Below are positions 26,865-64,000 of a DNA stretch of 64,000 bases, piece by piece. A model generated the notes under the pieces. It made no database searches. It saw nothing but the letters and a program-made list of their open reading frames with translations, and had not been told where the DNA came from. Position numbers and translations under genes: made by a program. Source of the stretch: Macrostomum lignano (lineage: Eukaryota); the NCBI GenBank assembly GCA_002269645.1, contig NIVC01001580.1, positions 1 through 64,000 on the forward strand. The letters run 5' to 3'. Positions within the stretch are counted from its first letter, which is position 1. The number at the start of each line of letters is the position of its first letter.

Positions 26865-29428
<2,564 letters not shown>

Positions 29429-30328
29429 CTAAATTGTGTGATGAGTTTACATACAGGGACTTGCTAATTATTTCACTGACTATTACATCTATGGAAGAAA
29501 AAGTATCAAGGCACTCCGCATAGGCTGCTACGCTACGCAATGCTAGTTTAGAAAAACAAAAAATTAAATTTTAGTTGTATGGCTGCAAATTGTAGTCAAT
29601 TTCAGATAGCCGTATCTCCAACCCAGAAGTTGCAGTCTTAGAGAGAACAAAATTTCAAGCAACCTGCCGAAAATTTATCATGTCAAGCGCAGTTAATCCA
29701 GAATTATGAGCACTTAAATCTTAGGTGCAATGCTAACAAGTGAGCCTTCTAATAGTTTAACAAAATGGGTGTTGCTTCCAGATTACTTCTAGTGGTCCTT
29801 GCGCTGCCTACGCACTTTACCCGACTCACTATTGTAAGCTGGAGAAAATAGCTAACGCATTTGAAAGAATTTCATCTCGTCGCTTCTTGGGCATCACAGC
29901 ATCATGCCAAGGTGAAGCGCGCGACCATCTCTTTTTTCTTCTCTCTCCACTCCATCTCTCTCCACTCCAGCCCAAAAATAAACTGTACACCTATTCCAAG
30001 CTCAAACAGAATGAGTGCACTCACTTCGGCGCTCTCATTGCGGTATTAAATATGCTAAGAAGCCGGGATATTCCACACAGGATGCCGCGAATTTACGAGT
30101 TCGGAAATCCAAGATATCCGGCCTGAACAAAACCGGGAAACCTAACGTTTTTGTGAGTGGCAAAGATTTCGCTTTCGTCCCTCTTGCATATCCCTGAATT
30201 AAAACTGCATTATTGAATATATATACAGGTGAATTCACAGCAGTGTGTGTGCAATAAGCAGTGGCTACCGCACTGCTCAAGAAGCATTCTATCTGGAAAA
30301 TACAAATACTCCAAAATTGCTGCCCAAC

Positions 30329-36073: not shown

Positions 36074-36270
36074 TGTAGTGAGCGAGAGAAAGCCAGTCAG
36101 GTTTAGTCCAAAAAACAAAATTCAAACCCTCACCCGAAGGGTGGAGCTATTCTTATATTTACTCGAGAACACATGTACATATACAAACAGAGCGCGCATG
36201 TACATCGCATCCCTTGACCCCCAAACACCGACTAGCAAAACAAACCAGTGAGTAAACTCACTTTACAACA
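36074..36270 (-). repeat. 3' LTR
   Basis: tgtagtgagcg...ctttacaaca. Confidence 0.95.
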
Positions 36271-36718
36271 TTCACCCTCCTACTTAACAGTCACTAATTC
36301 CCTTCACAGCTGGCAATCAATGCGTCACGACCTGGCCGTACCACAACGGTGGTGCCCGCAGTCGCGTACTGCGCCGCAGCTCCGCGTCGGCCTCAGCGGT
36401 CGCCAGCGGCGGGTCCGTCGGGCCTTCTGGCGCTGCCGGCTCTGCAGCCACTGGCGGCTGTGGCGGCATTGCCGTTGCCGAAGTCGTGCTGGCACCCTCG
36501 GGCTCCGCATGAGGCATACAGAGGCTGGTGTGCCACCTTGAGCCGTCCTCTAACCTGACGATCGTCTGGCTGATGATGTCGCTGACCCGTAGAGGTGGTG
36601 ACACGTGGCTCTGCAGCTTGCCTCGCATCCGCGGAGATCGCACTCGCACCAGGTCGCCGACCCGGAATTGGGGCGGTCGGGTTCTTTGAGCACTTGAACT
36701 TCTTTTGAACCGACTCTC

Positions 36719-38164: not shown

Positions 38165-38244
38165 GACTTGGCAGATTTTAGAGTTCGCGCTTGTGCTGAA
38201 TCACGCTGGCCCAAATCAATTGATTTCTCCACGCGACGCCAAAA

Positions 38245-38441
38245 TGTAGTGAGCGAGAGAAAGCCAGTCAGGTTTAGTCCAAAAAACAAAATTCAAACCC
38301 TCACCCGAAGGGTGGAGCTATTCTTATATTTACTCGAAAACGCATGTACATATACAAACAGAGCGCGCATGTACATCGCATCCCTTGACCCCCAAACACC
38401 GACTAGCAAAACAAACCAGTGAGTAAACTCACTTTACAACA
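38245..38441 (-). repeat. 5' LTR
   Basis: Matches 36074-36270. Confidence 0.95.
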
Positions 38442-39135
38442 CTGATCATCCTGCACCGTCGCTCTCAGCTGAAAAACTGCAAAATTGTCATCTTCACCGG
38501 CATGATCAATCGGCTGAGCTGGCGTTACTCCCGGTTCCTGCAGGTGTACCAGACTGTGGCTCTGCTGTGCATCAGGAACAGCATCAGTTTGGAGGCCTTT
38601 CACCTACTTGGTCGCATGCAGATTTTTTCTGATGCCGCCTTCCGCATGTTTGCCTCGCAATCTGAGCTCAATAACTTTTGCTGCCGCTACTACCGTACGC
38701 TCGTGATCTGCCCGCTTCAGTTCGCGTTCTCTATCTCCTCTCCTTCTGCAGGTCGACCTCGCCCTCCGGAGACGCCGCCCGTCCCTCCGCTGTGTCCGCC
38801 GGACACCTGTGCCGCCTCGGCCTGGCGGAGAACTCCTGGCGATCCTACCTCAGCCAGCTGCGCTCCTTGGGAAGCCTTCTGTGCTAGCGCAGGCCGCCCT
38901 TCATCTCCACTGACCTCTTGTGCCGCTACATCGGGCACCTGCTGAGCACCTGGCTCCGTTCTTCTCCAGTCTCTGAGCCTGCGTCCACGCCGTCTCGTTT
39001 CTGCACCAAGTCACTAGCGCCCCTGACGCATCAAAAGTCTTCACCGTGCAGCTGGCTCTCCGCGGCGCCAAACGTCATCTGGGCGTGCTATGCAAACAGG
39101 CAAAGCCGCTGAGCATCGAGCGTCTCAAGAGCATG
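38442..39135 (+). mobile_element. Decayed DIRS-order retrotransposon, 3' part (rest of RNase H, N-terminal domain of tyrosine recombinase), truncated
   Basis: LLI|ILHRRSQLKNCKIVIFT resumes after TSD; RSYLSQL, LCRYIGHL, LALRGAKRHLG...KPLSIERL. Confidence 0.75.
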
Positions 39136-39490: not shown

Positions 39491-40224
39491 TTTAAAGTCA
39501 GCAAAATCCAAAAAGTCAACAAATGTTCCAGTGACAGTTGTTGCTTTTACAATCGTCGCATCTGAAATAGTGCTATAAAAACTGAGCCCATCGGAAAATT
39601 GTATACATAGAGTATATGGGATGCCATTTGCTCTACTCTGCCTCAGATAATTGACTGTAAGCATCATAGAACGTTGGTGATGTTGAAGTTAACCTAAATG
39701 TACTGATAAGAATACGTGCTTGAACAAGATTCAAAATATAACATTCTTTTTGTGCAAGGAATCGGAGGTGTTACCCCGAAAACGGCTTCTCTCTATTATC
39801 TAACGCTTTTTCCTTATTTAGAATTTCGAAATCGCACTGTGAGACACTGATTCTGTGCGGTTCTTCACTTTTTGCTTTGGAGTTGAAGAGTTAATGTACT
39901 TCAAGCACCAAATAGTTGGTTCAATTGATGAAAGTAAAAAAGTTTCATCAGTCGGTGCACTCGTAATTTTTATCGAAAATGTAAAAAAACTGCATCAATT
40001 TTTATATATAACAGATTTTATTTCCTTTTTGGACACTTATAAAGCTTTAATCTACAAGCTGCATGTAGAGTGGTGCTCGAAATAAAGATCGGTCTACCAA
40101 CTGCGATCGATTTTTATTCCGCATTTCTGTTCTGCGATCCGACATATCACATCTTAAGAAAGGACTGACAAATCTGACATCTGGACTGGCTTGTACTTCT
40201 GTGACTAAAACCTACTGCTTCCGC

Positions 40225-43200
40225 AAAGCAATGTACACTCGTGACTGGATGGTTGTTCACACAACAGCCTCTCTTCTCCAAAGCAATGTACACTCGTGAC
40301 TGGATGGTTGTTCACACAACAGCCTCTCTTCTCCAAAGCAATGTACACTCGTGACTGGATGGTTGTTCACACAACAGCCTCTCTTCTCCAAAGCAATGTA
40401 CACTCGTGACTGGATGGTTGTTCACACAACAGCCTCTCTTCTCCAAAGCAATGTACACTCGTGACTGGATCGTTGTTCACACATCAGCCTCTCTTCTCCA
40501 AAGCAATGTACACTCGTGACTGGATGGTTGTTCACACAACAGCCTCTCTTCTCCAAAGCAATGTACACTCGTGACTGGATCGTTGTTCACACAACAGCCT
40601 CTCTTCTCCAAAGCAATGTACACTCGTGACTGGATGGTTGTTCACACATCAGCCTCTCTTCTCCAAAGCAATGTACACTCGTGACTGGATGGTTGTTCAC
40701 ACATCAGCCTCTCTTCTCCAAAGCAATGTACACTCGTGACTGGATGGTTGTTCACACAACAGCCTCTCTTCTCCAAAGCAATGTACACTCGTGACTGGAT
40801 GGTTGTTCACACAACAGCCTCTCTTCTCCAAAGCAATGTACACTCGTGACTGGATGGTTGTTCACACAACAGCCTCTCTTCTCCAAAGCAATGTACACTC
40901 GTGACTGGATGGTTGTTCACACAACAGCCTCTCTTCTCCAAAGCAATGTACACTCGTGACTGGATGGTTGTTCACACAACAGCCTCTCTTCTCCAAAGCA
41001 ATGTACACTCGTGACTGGATGGTTGTTCACACATCAGCCTCTCTTCTCCAAAGCAATGTACACTCGTGACTGGATCGTTGTTCACACATCAGCCTCTCTT
41101 CTCCAAAGCAATGTACACTCGTGACTGGATCGTTGTTCACACATCAGCCTCTCTTCTCCAAAGCAATGTACACTCGTGACTGGATGGTTGTTCACACAAC
41201 AGCCTCTCTTCTCCAAAGCAATGTACACTCGTGACTGGATCGTTGTTCACACATCAGCCTCTCTTCTCCAAAGCAATGTACACTCGTGACTGGATGGTTG
41301 TTCACACAATAGCCTCTCTCTTCTCCAAAGCAATGTACACTCGTGACTGGATCGTTGTTCACACATCAGCCTCTCTTCTCCAAAGCAATGTACACTCGTG
41401 ACTGGATGGTTGTTCACACAACAGCCTCTCTTCTCCAAAGCAATGTACACTCGTGACTGGATGGTTGTTCACACAACAGCCTCTCTTCTCCAAAGCAATG
41501 TACACTCGTGACTGGATGGTTGTTCACACAACAGCCTCTCTTCTCCAAAGCAATGTACACTCGTGACTGGATGGTTGTTCACACATCAGCCTCTCTTCTC
41601 CAAAGCAATGTACACTCGTGACTGGATCGTTGTTCACACATCAGCCTCTCTTCTCCAAAGCAATGTACACTCGTGACTGGATGGTTGTTCACACATCAGC
41701 CTCTCTTCTCCAAAGCAATGTACACTCGTGACTGGATGGTTGTTCACACATCAGCCTCTCTTCTCCAAAGCAATGTACACTCGTGACTGGATGGTTGTTC
41801 ACACAACAGCCTCTCTTCTCCAAAGCAATGTACACTCGTGACTGGATGGTTGTTCACACAACAGCCTCTCTTCTCCAAAGCAATGTACACTCGTGACTGG
41901 ATCGTTGTTCACACATCAGCCTCTCTTCTCCAAAGCAATGTACACTCGTGACTGGATGGTTGTTCACACAACAGCCTCTCTTCTCCAAAGCAATGTACAC
42001 TCGTGACTGGATGGTTGTTCACACAACAGCCTCTCTTCTCCAAAGCAATGTACACTCGTGACTGGATGTTGTTCACACATCAGCCTCTCTTCTCCAAAGC
42101 AATGTACACTCGTGACTGGATGGTTGTTCACACAACAGCCTCTCTTCTCCAAAGCAATGTACACTCGTGACTGGATGGTTGTTCACACAACAGCCTCTCT
42201 TCTCCAAAGCAATGTACACTCGTGACTGGATGGTTGTTCACACAACAGCCTCTCTTCTCCAAAGCAATGTACACTCGTGACTGGATCGTTGTTCACACAA
42301 CAGCCTCTCTTCTCCAAAGCAATGTACACTCGTGACTGGATCGTTGTTCACACAACAGCCTCTCTTCTCCAAAGCAATGTACACTCGTGACTGGATGGTT
42401 GTTCACACAACAGCCTCTCTTCTCCAAAGCAATGTACACTCGTGACTGGATGGTTGTTCACACAACAGCCTCTCTTCTCCAAAGCAATGTACACTCGTGA
42501 CTGGATCGTTGTTCACACATCAGCCTCTCTTCTCCAAAGCAATGTACACTCGTGACTGGATGGTTGTTCACACAACAGCCTCTCTTCTCCAAAGCAATGT
42601 ACACTCGTGACTGGATGGTTGTTCACACAACAGCCTCTCTTCTCCAAAGCAATGTACACTCGTGACTGGATCGTTGTTCACACATCAGCCTCTCTTCTCC
42701 AAAGCAATGTACACTCGTGACTGGATCGTTGTTCACACATCAGCCTCTCTTCTCCAAAGCAATGTACACTCGTGACTGGATGGTTGTTCACACATCAGCC
42801 TCTCTTCTCCAAAGCAATGTACACTCGTGACTGGATGTTGTTCACACATCAGCCTCTCTTCTCCAAAGCAATGTACACTCGTGACTGGATGGTTGTTCAC
42901 ACAACAGCCTCTCTTCTCCAAAGCAATGTACACTCGTGACTGGATGGTTGTTCACACAACAGCCTCTCTTCTCCAAAGCAATGTACACTCGTGACTGGAT
43001 GGTTGTTCACACAACAGCCTCTCTTCTCCAAAGCAATGTACACTCGTGACTGGATGGTTGTTCACACAACAGCCTCTCTTCTCCAAAGCAATGTACACTC
43101 GTGACTGGATGGTTGTTCACACAACAGCCTCTCTTCTCCAAAGCAATGTACACTCGTGACTGGATGGTTGTTCACACAACAGCCTCTCTTCTCCAAAGCA

Positions 43201-46200
43201 ATGTACACTCGTGACTGGATGTTGTTCACACATCAGCCTCTCTTCTCCAAAGCAATGTACACTCGTGACTGGATGGTTGTTCACACATCAGCCTCTCTTC
43301 TCCAAAGCAATGTACACTCGTGACTGGATGGTTGTTCACACATCAGCCTCTCTTCTCCAAAGCAATGTACACTCGTGACTGGATGGTTGTTCACACAACA
43401 GCCTCTCTTCTCCAAAGCAATGTACACTCGTGACTGGATGGTTGTTCACACATCAGCCTCTCTTCTCCAAAGCAATGTACACTCGTGACTGGATGGTTGT
43501 TCACACAACAGCCTCTCTTCTCCAAAGCAATGTACACTCGTGACTGGATGGTTGTTCACACAACAGCCTCTCTTCTCCAAAGCAATGTACACTCGTGACT
43601 GGATGGTTGTTCACACAACAGCCTCTCTTCTCCAAAGCAATGTACACTCGTGACTGGATGGTTGTTCACACAACAGCCTCTCTTCTCCAAAGCAATGTAC
43701 ACTCGTGACTGGATGGTTGTTCACACAACAGCCTCTCTTCTCCAAAGCAATGTACACTCGTGACTGGATGGTTGTTCACACAACAGCCTCTCTTCTCCAA
43801 AGCAATGTACACTCGTGACTGGATGGTTGTTCACACAACAGCCTCTCTTCTCCAAAGCAATGTACACTCGTGACTGGATGGTTGTTCACACAACAGCCTC
43901 TCTTCTCCAAAGCAATGTACACTCGTGACTGGATGGTTGTTCACACAACAGCCTCTCTTCTCCAAAGCAATGTACACTCGTGACTGGATGGTTGTTCACA
44001 CAACAGCCTCTCTTCTCCAAAGCAATGTACACTCGTGACTGGATGGTTGTTCACACAACAGCCTCTCTTCTCCAAAGCAATGTACACTCGTGACTGGATG
44101 GTTGTTCACACATCAGCCTCTCTTCTCCAAAGCAATGTACACTCGTGACTGGATGTTGTTCACACATCAGCCTCTCTTCTCCAAAGCAATGTACACTCGT
44201 GACTGGATGGTTGTTCACACATCAGCCTCTCTTCTCCAAAGCAATGTACACTCGTGACTGGATGTTGTTCACACATCAGCCTCTCTTCTCCAAAGCAATG
44301 TACACTCGTGACTGGATGGTTGTTCACACAACAGCCTCTCTTCTCCAAAGCAATGTACACTCGTGACTGGATGGTTGTTCACACAACAGCCTCTCTTCTC
44401 CAAAGCAATGTACACTCGTGACTGGATGGTTGTTCACACAACAGCCTCTCTTCTCCAAAGCAATGTACACTCGTGACTGGATGGTTGTTCACACAACAGC
44501 CTCTCTTCTCCAAAGCAATGTACACTCGTGACTGGATGGTTGTTCACACAACAGCCTCTCTTCTCCAAAGCAATGTACACTCGTGACTGGATGGTTGTTC
44601 ACACATCAGCCTCTCTTCTCCAAAGCAATGTACACTCGTGACTGGATGGTTGTTCACACATCAGCCTCTCTTCTCCAAAGCAATGTACACTCGTGACTGG
44701 ATGGTTGTTCACACATCAGCCTCTCTTCTCCAAAGCAATGTACACTCGTGACTGGATGGTTGTTCACACAACAGCCTCTCTTCTCCAAAGCAATGTACAC
44801 TCGTGACTGGATGGTTGTTCACACATCAGCCTCTCTTCTCCAAAGCAATGTACACTCGTGACTGGATGGTTGTTCACACAACAGCCTCTCTTCTCCAAAG
44901 CAATGTACACTCGTGACTGGATGGTTGTTCACACAACAGCCTCTCTTCTCCAAAGCAATGTACACTCGTGACTGGATGGTTGTTCACACAACAGCCTCTC
45001 TTCTCCAAAGCAATGTACACTCGTGACTGGATGGTTGTTCACACAACAGCCTCTCTTCTCCAAAGCAATGTACACTCGTGACTGGATGGTTGTTCACACA
45101 ACAGCCTCTCTTCTCCAAAGCAATGTACACTCGTGACTGGATGGTTGTTCACACAACAGCCTCTCTTCTCCAAAGCAATGTACACTCGTGACTGGATGTT
45201 GTTCACACATCAGCCTCTCTTCTCCAAAGCAATGTACACTCGTGACTGGATGGTTGTTCACACATCAGCCTCTCTTCTCCAAAGCAATGTACACTCGTGA
45301 CTGGATGGTTGTTCACACATCAGCCTCTCTTCTCCAAAGCAATGTACACTCGTGACTGGATGGTTGTTCACACAACAGCCTCTCTTCTCCAAAGCAATGT
45401 ACACTCGTGACTGGATGGTTGTTCACACATCAGCCTCTCTTCTCCAAAGCAATGTACACTCGTGACTGGATGTTGTTCACACAACAGCCTCTCTTCTCCA
45501 AAGCAATGTACACTCGTGACTGGATGGTTGTTCACACAACAGCCTCTCTTCTCCAAAGCAATGTACACTCGTGACTGGATGGTTGTTCACACAACAGCCT
45601 CTCTTCTCCAAAGCAATGTACACTCGTGACTGGATGGTTGTTCACACAACAGCCTCTCTTCTCCAAAGCAATGTACACTCGTGACTGGATGGTTGTTCAC
45701 ACAACAGCCTCTCTTCTCCAAAGCAATGTACACTCGTGACTGGATGGTTGTTCACACAACAGCCTCTCTTCTCCAAAGCAATGTACACTCGTGACTGGAT
45801 GGTTGTTCACACAACAGCCTCTCTTCTCCAAAGCAATGTACACTCGTGACTGGATGGTTGTTCACACAACAGCCTCTCTTCTCCAAAGCAATGTACACTC
45901 GTGACTGGATGGTTGTTCACACAACAGCCTCTCTTCTCCAAAGCAATGTACACTCGTGACTGGATGGTTGTTCACACATCAGCCTCTCTTCTCCAAAGCA
46001 ATGTACACTCGTGACTGGATGGTTGTTCACACAACAGCCTCTCTTCTCCAAAGCAATGTACACTCGTGACTGGATGGTTGTTCACACATCAGCCTCTCTT
46101 CTCCAAAGCAATGTACACTCGTGACTGGATGGTTGTTCACACAACAGCCTCTCTTCTCCAAAGCAATGTACACTCGTGACTGGATGGTTGTTCACACAAC

Positions 46201-49200
46201 AGCCTCTCTTCTCCAAAGCAATGTACACTCGTGACTGGATGGTTGTTCACACATCAGCCTCTCTTCTCCAAAGCAATGTACACTCGTGACTGGATGTTGT
46301 TCACACATCAGCCTCTCTTCTCCAAAGCAATGTACACTCGTGACTGGATGGTTGTTCACACATCAGCCTCTCTTCTCCAAAGCAATGTACACTCGTGACT
46401 GGATGGTTGTTCACACAACAGCCTCTCTTCTCCAAAGCAATGTACACTCGTGACTGGATGGTTGTTCACACAACAGCCTCTCTTCTCCAAAGCAATGTAC
46501 ACTCGTGACTGGATGGTTGTTCACACAACAGCCTCTCTTCTCCAAAGCAATGTACACTCGTGACTGGATGGTTGTTCACACAACAGCCTCTCTTCTCCAA
46601 AGCAATGTACACTCGTGACTGGATGGTTGTTCACACATCAGCCTCTCTTCTCCAAAGCAATGTACACTCGTGACTGGATGGTTGTTCACACATCAGCCTC
46701 TCTTCTCCAAAGCAATGTACACTCGTGACTGGATGGTTGTTCACACAACAGCCTCTCTTCTCCAAAGCAATGTACACTCGTGACTGGATGGTTGTTCACA
46801 CATCAGCCTCTCTTCTCCAAAGCAATGTACACTCGTGACTGGATGGTTGTTCACACAACAGCCTCTCTTCTCCAAAGCAATGTACACTCGTGACTGGATG
46901 GTTGTTCACACAACAGCCTCTCTTCTCCAAAGCAATGTACACTCGTGACTGGATGTTGTTCACACATCAGCCTCTCTTCTCCAAAGCAATGTACACTCGT
47001 GACTGGATGGTTGTTCACACAACAGCCTCTCTTCTCCAAAGCAATGTACACTCGTGACTGGATCGTTGTTCACACATCAGCCTCTCTTCTCCAAAGCAAT
47101 GTACACTCGTGACTGGATGGTTGTTCACACAACAGCCTCTCTTCTCCAAAGCAATGTACACTCGTGACTGGATGGTTGTTCACACATCAGCCTCTCTTCT
47201 CCAAAGCAATGTACACTCGTGACTGGATGGTTGTTCACACATCAGCCTCTCTTCTCCAAAGCAATGTACACTCGTGACTGGATGGTTGTTCACACAACAG
47301 CCTCTCTTCTCCAAAGCAATGTACACTCGTGACTGGATGGTTGTTCACACATCAGCCTCTCTTCTCCAAAGCAATGTACACTCGTGACTGGATGGTTGTT
47401 CACACATCAGCCTCTCTTCTCCAAAGCAATGTACACTCGTGACTGGATGGTTGTTCACACATCAGCCTCTCTTCTCCAAAGCAATGTACACTCGTGACTG
47501 GATGGTTGTTCACACAACAGCCTCTCTTCTCCAAAGCAATGTACACTCGTGACTGGATGGTTGTTCACACATCAGCCTCTCTTCTCCAAAGCAATGTACA
47601 CTCGTGACTGGATGGTTGTTCACACAACAGCCTCTCTTCTCCAAAGCAATGTACACTCGTGACTGGATGGTTGTTCACACATCAGCCTCTCTTCTCCAAA
47701 GCAATGTACACTCGTGACTGGATGGTTGTTCACACAACAGCCTCTCTTCTCCAAAGCAATGTACACTCGTGACTGGATGGTTGTTCACACATCAGCCTCT
47801 CTTCTCCAAAGCAATGTACACTCGTGACTGGATGGTTGTTCACACATCAGCCTCTCTTCTCCAAAGCAATGTACACTCGTGACTGGATGGTTGTTCACAC
47901 ATCAGCCTCTCTTCTCCAAAGCAATGTACACTCGTGACTGGATGGTTGTTCACACATCAGCCTCTCTTCTCCAAAGCAATGTACACTCGTGACTGGATGG
48001 TTGTTCACACAACAGCCTCTCTTCTCCAAAGCAATGTACACTCGTGACTGGATCGTTGTTCACACATCAGCCTCTTTTCTCCAAAGCAATGTACACTCGT
48101 GACTGGATGGTTGTTCACACATCAGCCTCTCTTCTCCAAAGCAATGTACACTCGTGACTGGATGGTTGTTCACACATCAGCCTCTCTTCTCCAAAGCAAT
48201 GTACACTCGTGACTGGATCGTTGTTCACACAACAGCCTCTCTTCTCCAAAGCAATGTACACTCGTGACTGGATCGTTGTTCACACATCAGCCTCTCTTCT
48301 CCAAAGCAATGTACACTCGTGACTGGATGGTTGTTCACACATCAGCCTCTCTTCTCCAAAGCAATGTACACTCGTGACTGGATGGTTGTTCACACAACAG
48401 CCTCTCTTCTCCAAAGCAATGTACACTCGTGACTGGATGGTTGTTCACACATCAGCCTCTCTTCTCCAAAGCAATGTACACTCGTGACTGGATCGTTGTT
48501 CACACAATAGCCTCTCTCTTCTCCAAAGCAATGTACACTCGTGACTGGATGGTTGTTCACACAACAGCCTCTCTTCTCCAAAGCAATGTACACTCGTGAC
48601 TGGATGGTTGTTCACACAACAGCCTCTCTTCTCCAAAGCAATGTACACTCGTGACTGGATGGTTGTTCACACAACAGCCTCTCTTCTCCAAAGCAATGTA
48701 CACTCGTGACTGGATGGTTGTTCACACAACAGCCTCTCTTCTCCAAAGCAATGTACACTCGTGACTGGATGGTTGTTCACACAACAGCCTCTCTTCTCCA
48801 AAGCAATGTACACTCGTGACTGGATGGTTGTTCACACAACAGCCTCTCTTCTCCAAAGCAATGTACACTCGTGACTGGATGGTTGTTCACACAACAGCCT
48901 CTCTTCTCCAAAGCAATGTACACTCGTACTGGATGGTTGTTCACACAACAGCCTCTCTTCTCCAAAGCAATGTACACTCGTGACTGGATGGTTGTTCACA
49001 CATCAGCCTCTCTTCTCCAAAGCAATGTACACTCGTGACTGGATGGTTGTTCACACAACAGCCTCTCTTCTCCAAAGCAATGTACACTCGTGACTGGATC
49101 GTTGTTCACACATCAGCCTCTCTTCTCCAAAGCAATGTACACTCGTGACTGGATCGTTGTTCACACATCAGCCTCTCTTCTCCAAAGCAATGTACACTCG

Positions 49201-49740
49201 TGACTGGATGGTTGTTCACACATCAGCCTCTCTTCTCCAAAGCAATGTACACTCGTGACTGGATCGTTGTTCACACATCAGCCTCTCTTCTCCAAAGCAA
49301 TGTACACTCGTGACTGGATGGTTGTTCACACAACAGCCTCTCTTCTCCAAAGCAATGTACACTCGTGACTGGATGGTTGTTCACACAACAGCCTCTCTTC
49401 TCCAAAGCAATGTACACTCGTGACTGGATGGTTGTTCACACAACAGCCTCTCTTCTCCAAAGCAATGTACACTCGTGACTGGATGGTTGTTCACACAACA
49501 GCCTCTCTTCTCCAAAGCAATGTACACTCGTGACTGGATGGTTGTTCACACAACAGCCTCTCTTCTCCAAAGCAATGTACACTCGTGACTGGATGGTTGT
49601 TCACACATCAGCCTCTCTTCTCCAAAGCAATGTACACTCGTGACTGGATGGTTGTTCACACAACAGCCTCTCTTCTCCAAAGCAATGTACACTCGTGACT
49701 GGATCGTTGTTCACACCCCAGCCTCTCTTCTCTAAGACAA
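40225..49740. repeat. 55-bp satellite array 1, about 173 units (AAAGCAATGTACACTCGTGACTGGAT(G/C)GTTGTTCACACA(A/T)CAGCCTCTCTTCTCC)
   Basis: Direct; no spacers. Confidence 0.99.
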
Positions 49741-50302
49741 TTGGCACTCATCAGCTAAGACGGTCGGTCCTAAAGAATATCAATAAATAAATAAATAAAT
49801 ATCGTGTCAGATTTAACATAGTTAGCATCATTGGAAGAAGCAGTTTTTGAATTAAGTCGAGCTGAAGTGAGCTCTAAAGTATTAATTAACTCGTGAAAAA
49901 AAGTGTGCAAAACATTACAACCACTTATAGGGTACATAAATATGCGTTGTTAGGCTGCTATAATTGCTATGCATATGTTTAACAAGTTGGTCGAACACGA
50001 AGACTGCAATAACGTTAGAGAAGGAAAAATTGGGATCGCTAGAAAAAAAACGCCTGGACAAAACTGGGATGGGATAAAAATCCCCTCAGACCCTGCGTGT
50101 GTCAGCCCCGGTGTCAGTCACCCTTGATGAGGGAGCCGATGGAGCCTGGGATGCGCTGGCCCACGAGAGGGAGAGCAGACGCCTTCCAGATCTCCGATGA
50201 AAAGGGGAACGCCTTTCATTAGAACTAGCGAGATGCAGTAATAATTGCTGCTAGCAATGCATTGCTTTGCAGGTGAGTCACGCAGCCTTAAAGCAAATGG
50301 CA

Positions 50303-50459
50303 TCACCGATGTTGTTGCATCAGGGAGGCTGGCTGCATGCAGCTCCGATTCACGAACTCCACTATTGATTTGGCGGATGAGTCGAGGTTGCCGCCCAGCA
50401 CCAGACACGCGTTTTGATCTCCGTAGAAACCGTACTTCTTGACCAGCAGACCGAACAAG
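50303..50459 (-). pseudogene. Isolated extra copy of tensin-like terminal (PTB C-terminal) exon
   Basis: 49740-50637 nearly identical to 55040-55941; upstream exons replaced by the 273-bp array. Confidence 0.8.
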
Positions 50460-50636
50460 CTGAAGCAAAACGATGGAGACTCGTGCAGGGTCTTTGATTT
50501 TACAATTAGCTCTATGCAGATCCGATTATATTGTAATATTACTCGTTCAGTAGGCCTACCTTGATACAGTTTGTGTTCCAACAGTATCAGAATACCTATA
50601 AATTAATAAAATGGTAACGTAACAAATGCATACCGA

Positions 50637-50728
<92 letters not shown>
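50637..50728. repeat. (GATA)n, about 23 units
   Basis: Direct. Confidence 0.98.
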
Positions 50729-52196
50729 TAGATAGCGAGAAAGAGCGAGCGAAGCGAGCTCTTTCGAGCTTGCTTGCCGCAGCCAATCAAGCTGAAAGCA
50801 CGCACACAAGATCACCGGAAACGATTAAGGCAGCTGGAAAGCCAATGGGCGCGGTAAGCGCTTTTATCCAGAGGAACTACCTGCTGGAACCAGCCATGCC
50901 GAACGAAAATCAGACTACTCAAGTAGTGCAAAAGAGTACGTGCAACTACCGAGAAATCTAATTTTCGTAACCGCTCCGGTGCAGGTCCTGGCTATAGATA
51001 GTAGATAGCGAGAAAGAGCGAGCGAAGCGAGCTCTTTCGAGCTTGCTTGCCGCAGCCAATCAAGCTGAAAGCACGCACACAAGATCACCGGAAACGATTA
51101 AGGCAGCTGGAAAGCCAATGGGCGCGGTAAGCGCTTTTATCCAGAGGAACTACCTGCTGGAACCAGCCATGCCGAACGAAAATCAGACTACTCAAGTAGT
51201 GCAAAAGAGTACGTGCAACTACCGAGAAATCTAATTTTCGTAACCGCTCCGGTGCAGGTCCTGGCTATAGATAGTAGATAGCGAGAAAGAGCGAGCGAAG
51301 CGAGCTCTTTCGAGCTTGCTTGCCGCAGCCAATCAAGCTGAAAGCACGCACACAAGATCACCGGAAACGATTAAGGCAGCTGGAAAGCCAATGGGCGCGG
51401 TAAGCGCTTTTATCCAGAGGAACTACCTGCTGGAACCAGCCATGCCGAACGAAAATCAGACTACTCAAGTAGTGCAAAAGAGTACGTGCAACTACCGAGA
51501 AATCTAATTTTCGTAACCGCTCCGGTGCAGGTCCTGGCTATAGATAGTAGATAGCGAGAAAGAGCGAGCGAAGCGAGCTCTTTCGAGCTTGCTTGCCGCA
51601 GCCAATCAAGCTGAAAGCACGCACACAAGATCACCGGAAACGATTAAGGCAGCTGGAAAGCCAATGGGCGCGGTAAGCGCTTTTATCCAGAGGAACTACC
51701 TGCTGGAACCAGCCATGCCGAACGAAAATCAGACTACTCAAGTAGTGCAAAAGAGTACGTGCAACTACCGAGAAATCTAATTTTCGTAACCGCTCCGGTG
51801 CAGGTCCTGGCTATAGATAGTAGATAGCGAGAAAGAGCGAGCGAAGCGAGCTCTTTCGAGCTTGCTTGCCGCAGCCAATCAAGCTGAAAGCACGCACACA
51901 AGATCACCGGAAACGATTAAGGCAGCTGGAAAGCCAATGGGCACGGTAAGCGCTTTTATCCAGAGGAACTACCTGCTGGAACCAGCCATGCCGAACGAAA
52001 ATCAGACTACTCAAGTAGTGCAAAAGAGTACGTGCAACTACCGAGAAATCTAATTTTCGTAACCGCTCCGGTGCAGGTCCTGGCTATAGATAGTAGATAG
52101 CGAGAAAGAGCGAGCGAAGCGAGCTCTTTCGAGCTTGCTTGCCGCAGCCAATCAAGCTGAAAGCACGCACACAAGATCACCGGAAACGATTAAGGC
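50721..52196. repeat. 273-bp tandem array, 5 full units plus partial
   Basis: Identical ORFs at 50770, 51043, 51316, 51589, 51862, 52135; one visible SNP (unit 5). Confidence 0.98.
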
Positions 52197-52207
52197 TCAA
52201 CGATTAA

Positions 52208-55040
52208 GTTCACACAACAGCCTCTCTTCTCCAAAGCAATGTACACTCGTGACTGGATGGTTGTTCACACAACAGCCTCTCTTCTTCAAAGCAATGTACA
52301 CTCGTGACTGGATGGTTGTTCACACAACAGCCTCTCTTCTCCAAAGCAATGTACACTCGTGACTGGATCGTTGTTCACACATCAGCCTCTCTTCTCCAAA
52401 GCAATGTACACTCGTGACTGGATGGTTGTTCACACAACAGCCTCTCTTCTCCAAAGCAATGTACACTCGTGACTGGATGGTTGTTCACACAACAGCCTCT
52501 CTTCTCCAAAGCAATGTACACTCGTGACTGGATCGTTGTTCACACAACAGCCTCTCTTCTCCAAAGCAATGTACACTCGTGACTGGATGGTTGTTCACAC
52601 AACAGCCTCTCTTCTCCAAAGCAATGTACACTCGTGACTGGATCGTTGTTCACACATCAGCCTCTCTTCTCCAAAGCAATGTACACTCGTGACTGGATCG
52701 TTGTTCACACATCAGCCTCTCTTCTCCAAAGCAATGTACACTCGTGACTGGATGGTTGTTCACACATCAGCCTCTCTTCTCCAAAGCAATGTACACTCGT
52801 GACTGGATGGTTGTTCACACAACAGCCTCTCTTCTCCAAAGCAATGTACACTCGTGACTGGATGGTTGTTCACACATCAGCCTCTCTTCTCCAAAGCAAT
52901 GTACACTCGTGACTGGATCGTTGTTCACACATCAGCCTCTCTTCTCCAAAGCAATGTACACTCGTGACTGGATGGTTGTTCACACAACAGCCTCTCTTCT
53001 TCAAAGCAATGTACACTCGTGACTGGATGGTTGTTCACACATCAGCCTCTCTTCTCCAAAGCAATGTACACTCATGACTGGATGGTTGTTCACACATCAG
53101 CCTCTCTTCTCCAAAGCAATGTACACTCGTGACTGGATGGTTGTTCACACAACAGCCTCTCTTCTCCAAAGCAATGTATACTCGTGACTGGATGGTTGTT
53201 CACACAACAGCCTCTCTTCTCCAAAGCAATGTACACTCGTGACTGGATGGTTGTTCACACAACAGCCTCTCTTCTCCAAAGCAATGTACACTCGTGACTG
53301 GATGGTTGTTCACACAACAGCCTCTCTTCTCCAAAGCAATGTACACTCGTGACTGGATCGTTGTTCACACATCAGCCTCTCTTCTCCAAAGCAATGTACA
53401 CTCGTGACTGGATGGTTGTTCACACAACAGCCTCTCTTCTCCAAAGCAATGTACACTCGTGACTGGATGGTTGTTCACACATCAGCCTCTCTTCTCCAAA
53501 GCAATGTACACTCGTGACTGGATGGTTGTTCACACAACAGCCTCTCTTCTCCAAAGCAATGTACACTCGTAACTGGATGGTTGTTCACACATCAGCCTCT
53601 CTTCTCCAAAGCAATGTACACTCGTGACTGGATCGTTGTTCACACATCAGCCTCTCTTCTCCAAAGCAATGTACACTCGTGACTGGATGGTTGTTCACAC
53701 AACAGCCTCTCTTCTCCAAAGCAATGTACACTCGTGACTGGATCGTTGTTCACACATCAGCCTCTCTTCTCCAAAGCAATGTACACTCGTGACTGGATGG
53801 TTGTTCACACATCAGCCTCTCTTCTCCAAAGCAATGTACACTCGTGACTGGATGGTTGTTCACACAACAGCCTCTCTTCTCCAAAGCAATGTACACTCGT
53901 GACTGGATGGTTGTTCACACATCAGCCTCTCTTCTCCAAAGCAATGTACACTCGTGACTGGATGGTTGTTCACACAACAGCCTCTCTTCTCCAAAGCAAT
54001 GTACACTCGTGACTGGATGGTTGTTCACACAACAGCCTCTCTTCTCCAAAGCAATGTACACTCGTGACTGGATGGTTGTTCACACATCAGCCTCTCTTCT
54101 CCAAAGCAATGTAGACTCGTGACTGGATGGTTGTTCACACATCAGCCTCTCTTCTCCAAAGCAATGTACACTCGTGACTGGATGGTTGTTCACACATCAG
54201 CCTCTCTTCTCCAAAGCAATGTACACTCGTGACTGGATGGTTGTTCACACAACAGCCTCTCTTCTCCAAAGCAATGTACACTCGTGACTGGATCGTTGTT
54301 CACACATCAGCCTCTCTTCTCCAAAGCAATGTACACTCGTGACTGGATGGTTGTTCACACATCAGCCTCTCTTCTCCAAAGCAATGTACACTCGTGACTG
54401 GATGGTTGTTCACACAACAGCCTCTCTTCTCCAAAGCAATGTACACTCGTGACTGGATGGTTGTTCACACATCAGCCTCTCTTCTCCAAAGCAATGTACA
54501 CTCGTGACTGGATGGTTGTTCACACAACAGCCTCTCTTCTCCAAAGCAATGTACACTCGTGACTGGATGGTTGTTCACACAACAGCCTCTCTTCTCCAAA
54601 GCAATGTACACTCGTGACTGGATGGTTGTTCACACATCAGCCTCTCTTCTCCAAAGCAATGTAGACTCGTGACTGGATGGTTGTTCACACATCAGCCTCT
54701 CTTCTCCAAAGCAATGTACACTCGTGACTGGATGGTTGTTCACACATCAGCCTCTCTTCTCCAAAGCAATGTACACTCGTGACTGGATGGTTGTTCACAC
54801 AACAGCCTCTCTTCTCCAAAGCAATGTACACTCGTGACTGGATGGTTGTTCACACATCAGCCTCTCTTCTCCAAAGCAATGTACACTCGTGACTGGATGG
54901 TTGTTCACACATCAGCCTCTCTTCTCCAAAGCAATGTACACTCGTGACTGGATGGTTGTTCACACAACAGCCTCTCTTCTCCAAAGCAATGTACACTCGT
55001 GACTGGATCGTTGTTCACACCCCAGCCTCTCTTCTCTAAG
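52208..55040. repeat. 55-bp satellite array 2, about 51 units
   Basis: Direct. Confidence 0.99.
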
Positions 55041-55606: not shown

Positions 55607-58540
<2,934 letters not shown>

Positions 58541-58998
58541 CTGAATTGTGTGATGAATTCACATGCGCGGACTTGCTAATTATTTCACTGACTATTACAT
58601 CTATGGAAGAAAAAGTATCAAGGCACTCCGCATAGGCTGCTACGCTACGCAATGCTAGTTTAGAAAAACAAAAAATTAAATTTTAGTTGTATGGCTGCAA
58701 ATTATAGTCAATTTCAGATAGCCGTATCTCCAAGCCAGAAGTTGCAGTCTTAGAAAGAACAAAATTTCAAGCAACCTGCCGAAAATTTATCATTTCACGC
58801 GCAGTTAATGTGTCCAATCGGCGTTTGCTGATTGGTTGTAAACACCCAGCCCAAGTCCACCCCCCTCTGCACTGCACCCCTCCGCCGTGAGGCTTTTATC
58901 ACCTAGCTTTTACTCAGCCTGCCTCACCTTTCTCGCGCGCTGCATGAAATTTTTTTATCGTACGGAGTGGCGTGAGTGCTGCCTAGGCTGCAACTGCA

Positions 58999-60071
58999 AT
59001 GGCCAAGATTTCAATTGACCAAATGACTGCAAGGCAGCTTAGAGACCGTCTGCGCCAACTGGGACTGCCAAGTGGCGGTAGCAAGCGAGAGTTGCAAGTC
59101 AGACTGGAACAAGCCAGTTTCTCAAATCAAGCCAAGCGACGTGGACGGCCAACAGCCACTCACTCGAGCGAAATCGACCGAGTCAGCACCAGCAGCAGCG
59201 ACGACGATGAGGAAGCGACCCTGGACGAGGCTGGCGCCCCGCAGGGCACCGACGATCTGGACCAGAGGATCGCCCGCCAAGAGAAGCTGCTTCGGCTGAG
59301 GACTCTTCAACGTCAGACTGCTGAGATCAAGGCTGAGCTGGAGAACAAGCCTTGCCAACAGAGCCGTAAGTTGCGGAGCCCCTTGCCGATTGACCGGTCT
59401 CCTGCTGCCTATGAGCCGGAGCTGGGACTGCCAGACCTGAGCCCTCAAGGCCTCTACAGCACTTCTGCCAGGCCGTCGGGACCGTCAAAGCCCCTTCTGG
59501 TAAAGGACTTTATCAACCGTGATGGCGAGGAGCCTGCCTCTGGCGAGAAGTCCAGGGTCCGGACTAAGCAGATCTCGGCGGGTCAGTGGGTAGCAGGCAG
59601 CAACCGAATCCTGCTGAAACTCCTCGACGAGGGGTCCTTGGTCACCGTTAAGGATGGCGCGGTGGATCTTGAACAGCTGAAGGCCTACGTTCGCTACTGT
59701 GTGCAGTTCGGCGAGTTTATGCACCAGGGTTTCAGTCAGGCCGCCCTCAACTGTTACGATGAAGACTTCAGGATGCTGCAACACCAGTCGAGCGGCAGCT
59801 GGGAGCGGGAGTCGCTGCAGCTGCTATCCAAGCACATTCTGGCACCAAAGTCAATCAGGGCGGCAACGCGATCTCCCAGCGCACCAACTTCAAGCCCAGT
59901 AGGCCAAAGCAGCAGCCGTCCGGTTTCGTCGGCCCGATCGATCCTGAGGGGCGGGAGCTGTGCGTGAAGTTCAACCGCAACGGCTGCCTACGGCGCGACT
60001 GCAAGTTCAGGCACGTCTGCTCCGCCTGCTACGAGGCGCACCCGCGCCAGTTCTGCACTTCAAAAAACTAG
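58999..60071 (+). CDS. Gag-like ORF1: N-terminal SAP-like motif, C-terminal Cys/His finger in the -1 frame (shift between 59830 and 59940)
   Basis: QMTARQLRDRLRQLGLPSGGSKRELQVRLEQ; ELCVKFNRNGCLRRDCKFRHVCSACYEAHPRQFC ends TAG 60069-60071. Confidence 0.8.
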
Positions 60072-61680
60072 ATCGCGGCCGGCCGGGGGCCTCAACTGGC
60101 AGCGCAGCTGCCCCGGCGGAAGCCAAAGTCGAACCCCCGCTGCCCCCGGCTGGCCCTGTCCCAAGCCCCTCGAGTCCGTCGCTTTTTCATCCGACCTCGC
60201 CACAGCCGCCTGGGAAGCTGAGCTGACTGACGATCCTGACCGCGAATTCCTGCTGAATGGCATCCGCAACGGTTTCCAACTCACCTGCCCTGACCCGTCA
60301 GAAAGAGCCTCAACTATGTCAGAAATCCAGAACTACGTATTAGTCAACAGTTACCGGCAGCTGGTCGAGCAGCAGGTGCGAGAGGAAATCCTTAATGGCC
60401 GCTACGTTCAAGTCAGTGACAAACCGGAGGTCATCAGCGCCCTTGGCGCCATTCCGAAGGGCAACAACAAGATTCGACTCATCCACGACTTCTCTAACCC
60501 TCCGGGTCTCTCCCTAAACAGCCGATTTTCTTCCGACCACAGAATCAAGTTCGAGACCGTCAGTCACTTCACCGCCAAGCTGCAGCCCGGTTGGTTCATG
60601 GCCAAAGTCGACCTCGCCAATGCCTACCGAAGTGTCGGCATCAGCCCGCACAATTTTCGGCTCACCGGCTTGAAGTGGAAATTCAGCGACCAGCGCAGCG
60701 ATTCGTACATCTGCGACACGCGGCTCCCCTTTGGCGCTGCTGCCTCCGTAGAAGTTTTCCACCGCCTGAGCCAGGCTGTCAAGCGCATGATGCAGAGACG
60801 GGGCTTCAACGATATTGGCAGTTATCTCGACGACTTCGCCATAGCAGCCTCCAGCAAGGACGACTGCCAGCTCGCTCTCGACACCCTGCTCAATCTGCTG
60901 CAGAAGCTTGGCTTCTCCATCAACTGGAGCAAGGTGGTGGCGCCGTGCACCAGACTGGTCTACCTGGGCGTCCTCATCGACACCGTCAGCGGCCTGCTGG
61001 AGCTTCCGAAGGACAAGCTCAACGCCACCAAGTCTCAGCTGTAGTCCGCGCTCTCTCGCAAGCGCATCACCAAGCGCCAACTCCAATCGCTCTGTGGCCG
61101 CATCAACTGGGTCTGCCAGGTGGTCCGCATCGGGAGGTGCTTCCTGAGACCACTCCTGCTCGAACTCAGCGACCTGAAGCAGCAGCGGCACAAACTGCGC
61201 GTGCACAATGATCTCCGCGAGATCCTAAGCTGGTGGGACGCCTGCCTGGCCGCCTCCCCCAGCTGCAAAATCTAGCGTTCTAACAGGCCCAGCTGGGCCA
61301 TCGAGTCCGACGCGTCCAACTGGGGCGGCTGCGGCATCATCCGCGGCCCAGACATCACAAGCTGGCTCATCATGGACTGGCACCGCGACTCAACCGAGAT
61401 CGAGCCGCTGCACATCAACTTCAAGGAAAGTCTCGCGCCAGTGCTTACGGCTCTGCATTTCCAGCAGCAGCTGCAACCGGGCAGCCAGCTTGTGATCTAC
61501 TCTGACAGCACCGCCGCAGTCGGCGCCATCAACAAGGGCTCGTCGCCAAATCGGGTCGTCAACTCGGCTCTGCAACAGCTGATGCTCCTCGCTGCGCACA
61601 GCGACCTCTCCGTCCAGGCCTTCCACGTCCCTGGGACATTCCAGATCTTCGCTGATAGTGGCAGCCGAGCCGATGACATC
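59968..61680 (+). pseudogene. RT-RNase H frame with two in-frame TAG stops (61042 and about 61272)
   Basis: AWEAELTDDPDREFLLNGIRNGF, RLIHDFS, KVDLANAYR, RLPFG, SYLDDF; IESDAS, HINFKE, IYSDS, HVPG...AD..SR all in one frame. Confidence 0.9.
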
Positions 61681-61745
61681 AGCGAGCTGACAAACTTCCT
61701 GCTCCAGCTCTTTGGCTCTGCTCACGTTGACCTTAGCAACTATAG

Positions 61746-62789
61746 CGAGCACACCCTCTCGCCAGCCACCTGCAAATTTCTCGCCCTACAGATCGCCCGC
61801 CTCAAGTCCCGAGCGCGAACTTCAGCAAGCGCTACCGCGAGCTCTGCCACCTGGCCTTCGCTGAGACAACCGCGCGCTCTTACCGCTGCCAGATCGACTC
61901 CTGGAAGCGGTTCTGCAAGCAGATGCGCATCGACAGCACCAGACCGTCTCTGCAGCAGGTCGCGCACTACATCATCGCGCTGTCCGACCGCCTCTCCTCG
62001 CATGCCAGCGTCGATGCATACATTAACGCCGCAGACCTGCACTGCAAGCTCAAGACCGGCCGCGGCCTTCCTCGCGACCCCCGCATCGACCTGCTCCTCC
62101 GCGGTGTCCAGCGCAAACTCGCCAAGCCACCGGCGCGCAAGGCGCCCATCACTCCGGGTGACCTCCTCAAACCGCGAGGAACCCTGCGCCTGCAGCAGCC
62201 TCAAGATGCAGCCTTCTGGGCGGCGGTCCTGGTCGGATTCTGGGGCCTCCTGCGCCGCGCCAATCTGTGCTGCTCGAAACCGTTCCCACCAGCCGGCGAG
62301 GCGGTCACCTGCGGCGACCTGCAAGTATCACCGGATCTGGCCATCCTGCACATTCGGCGTTCCAAGACGAACCAGTTCCGCCAGCGAGTGCACCGCGTTG
62401 TCCTGCCGCGCCTCCGGCACGCGGTGCAGCACCCGCTCTGCCCGGTGGCAGCGCTGCTTCACCACCTGCGCATCAACCAGCCCGACCGCGCCGCTGCTGC
62501 CCACCTCTTCGCCTACCGAAGCAGCGGCGGCCTGACGCCTCTGACCGGCACCCGGTTCTGTCGCCTGTTTCAGCACGTCGTCCACCGTGCCGGCCTGGCA
62601 GACCGGTCTCTGTCCCCTCACAGCCTTCGACGCGGCGGCGCCTCGCTGGCGTTCCGCGCCGGTGTGCCGCTGCCGGTCGTCAAGGCACTGGGCGACTGGC
62701 GGAGCTCGGCAGTTGAGGTGTACCTGGGGCTGGAGAAGGGCTTCGATCTCCAGCTGGCGGCTGTTCGCAAACTGTCAAACTGCCTATAA
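61746..62789 (+). CDS. Tyrosine recombinase, apparently intact (start codon not defined; frame open from 61746)
   Basis: N-terminal AFAETTARSY...WKRFC; catalytic LLRRAN (R), RSKTNQ (K), HSLRRGG (HxxR), GDWRSSAVEVY (W, Y). Confidence 0.9.
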   Translation, partial: RAHPLASHLQISRPTDRPPQVPSANFSKRYRELCHLAFAETTARSYRCQIDSWKRFCKQMRIDSTRPSLQQVAHYIIALSDRLSSHASVDAYINAADLHCKLKTGRGLPRDPRIDLLLRGVQRKLAKPPARKAPITPGDLLKPRGTLRLQQPQDAAFWAAVLVGFWGLLRRANLCCSKPFPPAGEAVTCGDLQVSPDLAILHIRRSKTNQFRQRVHRVVLPRLRHAVQHPLCPVAALLHHLRINQPDRAAAAHLFAYRSSGGLTPLTGTRFCRLFQHVVHRAGLADRSLSPHSLRRGGASLAFRAGVPLPVVKALGDWRSSAVEVYLGLEKGFDLQLAAVRKLSNCL

Positions 62790-63772
62790 GTTTTTCGTTT
62801 GCCTGCTCTGGGTTGAAGCTGGTGTGCTGTCTGCTTTCTTTTTCCTCTGGCTTGGACTCAAATGCTCTGATTTTTTTTTCTTCTCAACTTCTTGCACTTT
62901 TTCTTATTTCGTATTTTATTTTTTTGCAATGATGACTGTTGTTTTATCGATTAAGTGCTGTTTTAATGACTGTTAATTTTATTTTGCTTGCAAGCGTGTC
63001 CCAGCATCCTGCGTGCCCCCCGTTTTTCTTTCACTATTTTCCCATCATTTTTCGGATTTTGGACCGTCGTATCCACTCGCACTGTACTCAATTCTCGCAA
63101 ACACTCGCGTCCGTCTTCCCTTCCCTTGGGGTGTGGTGTTTACCAGAATTATGAGCACTTAAATCTTAGGTGCAATGCTAACAAGTGAGCCTTCTAATAG
63201 TTTAACAAAATGGGTGTTGCGTCCAGATTACTTCTAGCGGTCCTTGTGCTGCCTACGCACTTTACCCGACTCACTATTGTAAGCTGGAGAAAATAGCTAA
63301 CGCATTTGAAAGAATTTCATCTCGTCGCTTCTTGGGCATCACAGCATCATGCCAAGGTGAAGCGCGCGACCATCTCTTTTTTCTTCTGTCTCCACTCCAT
63401 CTCTCTCCACTCCAGCCCAAAAATAAACTGTACACCTATTCCAAGCTCAAACAGAATTAGTGCACTTACTTTGGCGCTCTCATTGCGGTATTAAATATGC
63501 TAAGAAGCCGGGATATTCCACACAGGATGCCGCGAATTTACGAGTTCGGAAATCCAAGATATCCGGCCTGAACAAAACCGGGAAACCTAACGTTTTTGTG
63601 AGTGGCAAAGATTTCGCTTTCGTCCCTCTTGCATATCCCTGAATTAAAACTGCATTATTGAATATATATACAGGTGAATTCACAGCAGTGTGTGTGCAAT
63701 AAGCAGTGGCTACCGCACTGCTCAAGAAGCATTCTATCTGGAAAATACAATACTCTAAAATTGCTGCCCAAC

Positions 63773-64000
63773 ATGAGCAATTATAACAAGCTCGCCATCG
63801 GACTGGTTGTTCTCGCCCTGAGCCTGATTGCAGCCGCTGACTGGGCAGGTGAGAGCTAATAAGAAGGTCCCGCATTTCCAAGAGTATTATCTTCTTTGAA
63901 CCTGGTACCTCACAGATAGCTTTGTGCAAGCCTCTGATACCGCTTTGAACCGATTTCAGACCAGCCAGCTTCAGACAAGCCAGCTTCAGACAAGCCAGCT
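63773..64000 (+). CDS. PAN/C-type lectin paralog: exon 1 (63773-63848) and start of exon 2 (63960 to window edge)
   Basis: Identical signal peptide exon and splice sites to 30329-30404 / 30515. Confidence 0.85.

Follow-up and report, generated by a model that had tools for sequence, protein, structure and literature searches.

A window of 64,000 nucleotides of Macrostomum lignano DNA (contig NIVC01001580.1 of assembly GCA_002269645.1, positions 1 to 64,000) carries an insert on its forward strand at 58810..63142, which is interpreted here as a unit-length (A-ORFs-B) copy of a Ngaro-like tyrosine recombinase (YR) retrotransposon, ORF standing for open reading frame. An earlier reading of the same DNA, hereafter the original prediction, had described a tyrosine-recombinase retrotransposon at this place and had proposed that a short segment near its 5' end pairs with both termini. 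The insert has a GC content of about 60%, compared with 30-50% in its surroundings.

Both termini of the insert are fixed to the base because an empty paralogous site exists in the same window. Comparison of the window with itself aligned the left flank (57500-58809) to 28404-29697 at 93.8% identity and the right flank (63143-63986) to 29698-30541 at 98.3% identity, and the paralog (29668..29730, forward strand, breakpoint 29697|29698) carries these flanks without the insert. The segmental duplication holds both the empty and the filled site, and the identity of its two flanks is asymmetric. The empty site reads GCGCAGTTAAT|CCAGAATT and the filled site GCGCAGTTAAT-GTGTCCAATC...GGTGTTTA-CCAGAATT, which delimits the insert as exactly 58810-63142 (4333 bp) with the insertion point TTAAT|CCAG. 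The T/A-rich core TTAAT (58805..58809), directly left of the insert on the target side, is present once in the empty site. No target-site duplication (TSD) is seen on comparing the empty with the filled site, as is characteristic of the DIRS order and as had been foreseen. The paralogous empty site had also been pointed out in the original prediction and is confirmed here, and the exact ends it provides lead to two corrections. The element had been taken to start at 58814, leaving a difference of four bases, GTGT, unexplained; GTGT (58810..58813, forward strand) is absent from the empty site and belongs to the element, whose true start is thus 4 nt earlier, at 58810. The trinucleotide CCA had been placed at both ends, but CCA at 63143-45 is flanking DNA, as it is present in the empty site too.

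The element encodes gag, reverse transcriptase/RNase H (RT/RH) and a tyrosine recombinase, all on the forward strand. The gag-like ORF (58999..60071) contains a SAP domain (Pfam SAP, E = 1.3e-7) and a Cys/His knuckle, and ends at a TAG stop (60069-71) that is kept in the relative L003; it is broken by one frameshift somewhere in 59763-59967, the three-frame translation showing an overlap between frames 1 and 0. The RT/RH ORF (60073..61800) matches Pfam RVT_1 (E = 1.5e-14) and RVT_thumb (E = 1.7e-5) and is 79% identical to the relative P0037, with which its RNase H part aligns throughout. This pol region contains in-frame TAG codons at 61042-44 and 61273-75, as well as a 1-nt deletion near 60147/60148 relative to L003. 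The tyrosine recombinase ORF (61812..62789, frame 0) is intact and begins about 130 amino acids after the RNase H region, in a frame different from that of RT/RH; the change of frame is considered native because P0037/L003 has the same change. Its Pfam Phage_integrase score is 24.6 bits, under the curated cut-off of 27.1, its homologues reach E = 4e-41, and the residues R148, K185, H270-x-x-R273, W296 and Y304 are invariant in an alignment with four homologues. The RT/RH matches and the invariant catalytic residues of the recombinase bear out the predicted identity of the element as a tyrosine-recombinase retrotransposon. A methyltransferase, protease or integrase gave no Pfam match in the element; between RNase H and YR, in particular, no methyltransferase was found, RVT_1 and RVT_thumb being the only matches in the pol ORF, as expected of a Ngaro-like element. 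The 3' untranslated region (UTR; 62790..63124, forward strand), equivalent to B minus the terminal segment R described below, contains neither ORFs nor repeats, and the distance from the YR stop to the element end is 353 nt, compared with 187-303 nt to the end of B1 in relatives. With two stops and at least two frameshifts, the window copy is decayed.

The terminal strings of the original prediction were all located where it had placed them, and a 5' segment complementary to both termini is real. An inner hairpin (58814..58835, forward strand) is formed by the arm L, CCAATCGGC (58814-22), the loop GTTT (58823-26) and the arm L', GCTGATTGG (58827-35), its 9-bp stem consisting of eight Watson-Crick pairs and one G-T pair. 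It is followed by the spacer TTG (58836..58838, forward strand) and by R', TAAACACCCAGCCCAAG (58839..58855, forward strand), which begins opposite the last base of the element. R' is complementary, at 16 of 18 positions and with one gap, to R, CTTGGGGTGTGGTGTTTA, the 3'-terminal 18 nt of the element (63125..63142, forward strand), whose terminus is set by the empty site. The order of the two halves, L'-R', is that needed to bridge a 3'-5' junction. R' is also the sole match to the 3'-terminal 18-mer inside the element (up to three edits, either strand). Among 20000 shuffles, one gave a match complementary to the 3' end inside the first 60 nt and 76 gave a 9-bp hairpin near the 5' end, while the R/R' duplex has an energy of −17.8 kcal/mol (p = 0.002). 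When the ends of the window copy are joined and folded with DNA parameters, one compound hairpin results (−22.2 kcal/mol, z = −7.1). The existence of the 5' splint is thus confirmed, and it is very probably functional.

The splint is, however, discontinuous. In the minimum free energy (MFE) structure TTG faces GTGT unpaired, which produces a 4/3-nt bubble exactly at the breakpoint. The bridge corresponds to ...TTTA-CAA-CCAATC, whereas the joined ends read ...TTTA-GTGT-CCAATC, and a continuous ligation splint was therefore rejected; CAA does not template GTGT, contrary to the proposal that the splint simply joins the 3' end to the 5' end. The lack of long inverted terminal repeats (ITRs) and of split direct repeats (SDRs) noted in the original prediction holds for the window copy. 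Direct and inverted repeats in 58700-63250 do not exceed 31 nt at 71% identity. No ITRs are present in the copy, its only terminal inverted match being R/R' (17-18 nt), subterminal at the 5' end; it also has no split direct repeats, neither terminus having an internal direct copy, and in this it departs from the Ngaro layout.

The search for relatives yielded 561 RT homologues, and several relatives carry PF17917. Apart from L003, the nearest RTs are 40-46% identical and come from flatworms, scallop/mollusc and many short metagenome/SRA contigs. The best matches are unnamed elements with a Ngaro-type layout and split repeats, in a comparison that included no named Ngaro reference. The sole close relative, L003 (78% nucleotide identity), spans RT-YR only, both termini being missing. 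A gag protein search found nothing related, and metagenome scans with gag and with an RT alignment found no member of the family of the window element. The collection of copies that had been proposed as a check thus yielded distant relatives, but no copy of the same family with termini beyond that in the window.

Relatives in long contigs (L006, L008, L019, L020, L021 and the P152 family) show the arrangement A1-gag-RT/RH-YR-B1-A2-(unique spacer X)-B2. The P152 family comprises seven copies, and the five that are full-length all carry the repeats; these copies (L010-L016, with the element at 3325-8376 in L011) are about 99.5-99.9% identical and belong to one assembly. In L006, spacer X begins with bases (CCACCCTCCA, 9015-9025) that complement those at the start of A (TGGAGGGTGG, 4279-4288), and A2 is thereby bracketed by a 10-nt inverted repeat. 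The short-read contigs of L004 and L009 collapse to unit circles of 4303 nt and 4210 nt, respectively, and the assembly break of L004 is exactly the predicted end of B. The window insert is similar in size to these circles, which indicates that it comprises one unit (A-ORFs-B) and no more, with its ends at the B|A junction; the full repeat-bearing form of the element would be about 5 kb. L018 (1-8861) is a head-to-tail tandem of 5584-bp units with no internal split repeats, and the end of B is exactly where its array stops. Satellites prevented the element ends from being defined at the Argopecten locus L017, which was left out.

Junctions in the relatives are of one type, in which a T/A-rich B end is followed by GTGA, GTGT, TGAGT or similar; A starts with GTGA in P152 and L004, with TGAGT in L009 and with ATGGA in L006. 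P152 copies differ in the four positions preceding GTGAT (TAAT/TAAA/TTAT), but have TAAT at the right end without exception. Such a pattern suggests a target origin for the T/A core at the left end of the P152 copies, and the variable left and constant right core place the shared core at the B end, not at CCA. The target core TTAAT of the window resembles the cores of relatives, namely TAAT/TAAA/TTAT (P152), TTTAA (L021) and TTA (L008). As read from the empty site and the relatives, the breakpoint in the window is at TTTA|GTGT, and not at CCA, where recombination had been proposed. CCA as a crossover trinucleotide was rejected, as it leaves GTGT unexplained and the relatives put the shared core in the T/A-rich B end.

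The last 30 nt of B and the first 60 nt of A were folded for each family in which repeat boundaries or the empty site, and not the fold itself, define the ends. The MFE topology is as in the window in 7/8 of these families: B pairs through its 3' end with a stretch of A that begins at nt 25-36, and this pairing encloses a 6-11-bp hairpin starting at about nt 5 of A, with a few unpaired bases on each side of the inner hairpin. The last base of B is paired in all seven families showing the topology, and the hairpin at about nt 5 of A is present in L006, L019, L008, P152, L020, L021, L009 and L004. Short-loop hairpin scans of the relatives' UTRs had missed the structure, which became evident on folding the defined B|A junctions. 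Combining the shuffle p values of seven relatives by Fisher's method gives 1.2e-6 for the junction fold as a whole, 2.1e-4 for the duplex between the B end and A, and 0.005 for the hairpin. Furthermore, most of the stability gain is lost when B is swapped for the genomic flank of A1 (for example, −13.6 vs −0.9 kcal/mol in the window).

The two unit circles hold the structure in one piece, L009 as ...CCTTCACCGGCAAA|TGAGTG-AATCGGTGC-GTGA-GCACTGATT-TGTG-GTTTGCAGGTGAAGG and L004 as ...TATAGCAAA|GTGA-TAATTTA-GGAA-TAAATTA-AGT-TTTGC. The inner hairpin of L009 shares AATCGG/CTGATT with the window; its outer stem is wholly different in sequence, yet forms 13 pairs (−20.2 kcal/mol). Between families the sequences are almost completely different and the pairing is retained. 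The outer stem has 16 pairs in the window and 13 in L009, compared with 7-15 pairs and −8 to −17 kcal/mol in the repeat-bearing relatives, and in every family with the structure the outer stem ends at the DNA breakpoint. Judged from these sequences, the junction stem-loop appears to be a conserved cis-element of the clade, kept in shape without sequence in about ten Ngaro-like families.

Six families with the junction stem-loop also have the canonical A1...B1A2-X-B2 repeats, and the splint, being present alongside split repeats, is therefore not a substitute for them. The third, minimal end architecture advanced in the original prediction is at odds with this coexistence; its basis is also a single mutated unit-length copy, no other copy of the same family having been retrieved. 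No description of a Ngaro junction hairpin, or of a folded single-stranded DNA model, was found in the open literature searched, the founding Ngaro papers being outside reach, and the priority of the present description is uncertain.

A putative promoter core (58893..58917, forward strand) is formed by a TATA-like CTTTTAT (58893-99) and an initiator (Inr)-like TCAG (58914-17). Taken with the CCAAT and CACCC motifs that lie upstream, these sequences would place the transcription start some 105 nt into the element. The C-rich motif CCACCCCCC (58857..58865, forward strand) is the only CCCACCC-like site in the element. CCCACCC occurs at nt 48 in the window, directly after R', and at nt 83 in L009. 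CCCACCC(T) is nearly unique in each relative of about 5 kb, and in five of the six repeat-bearing families (L006, L019, L008, L011 and L020) CCCACCC occupies the first bases after A2, at the boundary of A2 with spacer X. Tf1-like self-priming and a role like that of a primer-binding site were considered for this motif, and no consistent scheme was obtained.

The explanation that best accommodates these observations, with a probability of about 0.6, is that the window insert is one mutated unit-length Ngaro-like copy whose ends are the separated halves of the compound junction stem-loop of the clade. According to this explanation, the last 7-18 nt of B (R) would pair with nt ~25-50 of A (R') and enclose a 6-11-bp hairpin starting about 5 nt into A, with a small unpaired bubble between the stems and the DNA breakpoint where the outer stem ends. 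The structure is intact at the internal B1|A2 of complete relatives and would re-form at the B2-A1 circle junction. Its most likely function would be to hold and define both termini in the manner of a bridge resembling DIRS1's internal complementary region (ICR), and it may possibly present the cut-and-join site of the recombinase, perhaps on folded single-stranded cDNA. Two duplex arms with a small unpaired centre and a breakpoint at the arm border would also give it the look of a tyrosine-recombinase core site. Intrastrand folding of single-stranded cDNA could produce this structure, which would also keep both ends of a linear cDNA together.

The A2-X-B2 module was probably lost via B1/B2 recombination or the integration of a unit circle, and the window copy is most likely a derivative of unit length and a dead end. 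SDR-less copies and consensus sequences are a common finding in Ngaro families of which further copies do possess SDRs (PMC9210276, PMC3783388). The repeat-less state is regarded as secondary because such SDR-less copies are common in Ngaro families, the copy is mutated, and the promoter-like motifs lie downstream of the bridge. With the motifs so placed, the window copy could not regenerate its own 5' ~100 nt, which would make it a dead end, and no second copy of the 5' segment from which it could be restored was found in the element.

Several points weigh against this explanation. The family is represented by a single copy with termini and not by its master form, and the transcription start is placed by motifs only. 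A bridge carrying the GTGT/TTG bubble is a poor ligase substrate, which complicates a function as a splint. Both the repeats and the stem-loop are missing from L018, and the stronger outer stem in the window/L009 lineage could reflect a greater reliance on the stem.

Foremost among the alternatives, though itself unlikely, is an autonomous lineage without ITRs or split repeats, in which the 5' bridge L'-TTG-R' would juxtapose the termini of a full-length or read-through transcript or cDNA, a circle would form and the recombinase would integrate it, amounting to a third YR end architecture. It would agree with an insert that is a discrete, complete gag-pol-YR unit without repeats, and with a bridge that is exceptionally strong in the window (16 pairs, z = −7.1) and also strong in the closest junction relative, L009 (13 pairs, −20.2 kcal/mol). 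The order L'-R' is also that of DIRS-1, whose ICR is experimentally essential (PMC7192593), and the tandems of L018 are an instance of repeat-less copies of unit length. Against such a lineage stand the coexistence of the structure with canonical repeats in six related families and the dependence of the proposal on one mutated copy. Furthermore, with a motif-inferred start about 105 nt inside the element and no second copy, a 46-nt bridge cannot restore the 5' end, and the junction GTGT is not templated by the CAA of the bridge.

Next in order stands the doubtful proposal that Ngaro elements have their own equivalent of the DIRS1 ICR in the compound B|A stem-loop, whose outer stem would end at the breakpoint and which folded single-stranded cDNA would present to the recombinase, and that the lengthening of this stem to 13-16 bp in the window and L009 renders repeat-less unit copies transposition-competent, again as a third YR end architecture.

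Still less probable is a role of the pairings in RNA, with R on R' self-priming minus-strand synthesis or the structure acting as a packaging/dimerisation signal; its agreement with the termini would then reflect the place at which synthesis begins. A 3' hairpin primer has been proposed for DIRS-1, and RT priming in the DIRS order is unsettled (PMC7192593). The intact B1|A2 stem-loop lies inside the transcript in the repeat-bearing relatives, and the G-T pairs in the stems of the window and L006 would be better tolerated in RNA. However, R priming on R' in a unit-length copy would copy just 29 nt, and it is the integrated DNA breakpoint, not merely the cDNA start, that lies at the stem end in every family, which points to a DNA-level event. 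A DNA-level role is ranked over an RNA-level role on account of this coincidence.

An incidental complementarity, in which the hairpin arms are inverted CCAAT boxes (CCAATCGG / CTGATTGGTT) and the 3'-end match arose by chance, is very improbable: both arms fit the CCAAT-box consensus and are followed by a CACCC-like run and by TATA-like and Inr-like elements, but the 3'-end match has a chance of 1/20000 and begins exactly opposite the terminal base, the combined p over the relatives is 1.2e-6, and L009 (GAATCGGTG/GCACTGATT), L006 and L021 keep a hairpin at the same position without the CCAAT sequence, which weakens CCAAT boxes as its sole account.

Elsewhere in the window, a second and more distant Ngaro-like fragment (34384-38645) encodes gag and RT/RH at 30-46% amino acid identity to the element studied here, and no YR was found in it. 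It is interrupted by a minus-strand ORF of the long terminal repeat (LTR) type encoding gag-protease (36719-38164; Pfam RVP, gag-asp_proteas). The UTRs of the fragment have no similarity to the studied element, and its ends are not definable. Just upstream of the fragment, a GC-rich open frame with a Cys/His motif at its end occupies 32700-33510 and resembles, by eye, the 3' portion of a non-LTR retrotransposon. At 40224-55036, about 269 copies of a 55-bp unit (85% matches) form a satellite, which is followed by (ATAG)n in 144 copies at 55941-56517. At 4230-7768 lies a host gene whose long ORFs contain HEAT repeats (Pfam HEAT_EZ, HEAT); by eye its sequence resembles splicing factor 3B subunit 1.

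Ngaro-like elements of the DIRS order have split direct repeats in the arrangement A1-[gag, RT/RH, YR]-B1A2B2 and no methyltransferase domain (PMC9210276, PMC4157794, PMC8547959). The window element resembles them in its gene order (gag - RT/RH - YR), its overlapping frames, the lack of a methyltransferase and of a TSD, and its unit of about 4.3 kb. The relatives nearest to it in RT (40-46% identity) have the layout A1...B1A2(-X-)B2, and the window element shares with the Ngaro-like relatives the type of junction (T/A-rich B end | GTG...) and the junction stem-loop. It differs from Ngaro in that the copy is one unit with no A2/B2 and in its much longer junction stem of 16 pairs. On the evidence of its sequence, the element is best placed in the DIRS order and the Ngaro-like lineage, as a copy lacking the split repeats.

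DIRS1-like elements have inverted terminal repeats and an ICR near the 3' end (PMC3266345, PMC7192593), the halves of which measure 36-88 nt and overlap on a 3-bp circular junction (PMC3266345); in DIRS-1 the ICR is experimentally essential and the cDNA intermediates are single-stranded (PMC7192593). Like DIRS1, the window element has an internal segment that complements the 5' and then the 3' terminus in the order L'-R' and can bridge a circle junction, and it is integrated without a TSD at a short T/A-rich core. Unlike DIRS1, it has no ITRs and no Dam-like methyltransferase (no Pfam match), which separates it from both DIRS1-like and PAT-like elements. Its bridge is of 9+17 nt and is situated at the 5' end, beside the left terminus (nt 18-46), and the halves are parted by the unpaired 3-nt/4-nt bubble, TTG not being complementary to GTGT, with no 3-bp overlap.

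As an insertion, the window copy is ordinary and decayed; its value lies in the base-exact termini provided by the empty-site paralog. To our knowledge, the rebuilding of ends in YR retrotransposons is experimentally known only for DIRS-1, those of Ngaro, PAT and VIPER being repeat-based models on paper. Integron attC and CTX-phi attP(+) are folded single-strand sites of bacterial tyrosine recombinases, cut at the border between arm and centre. The window junction, in which intrastrand duplex arms would flank an unpaired centre, may be likened to these sites by analogy; its arm lengths and spacing differ from theirs, it shows no link to them in sequence, and the link at the protein level is the general YR fold only. 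If confirmed, the junction stem-loop would provide a concrete substrate for recombinase biochemistry and would link the logic of the DIRS1 ICR with the split-repeat elements.

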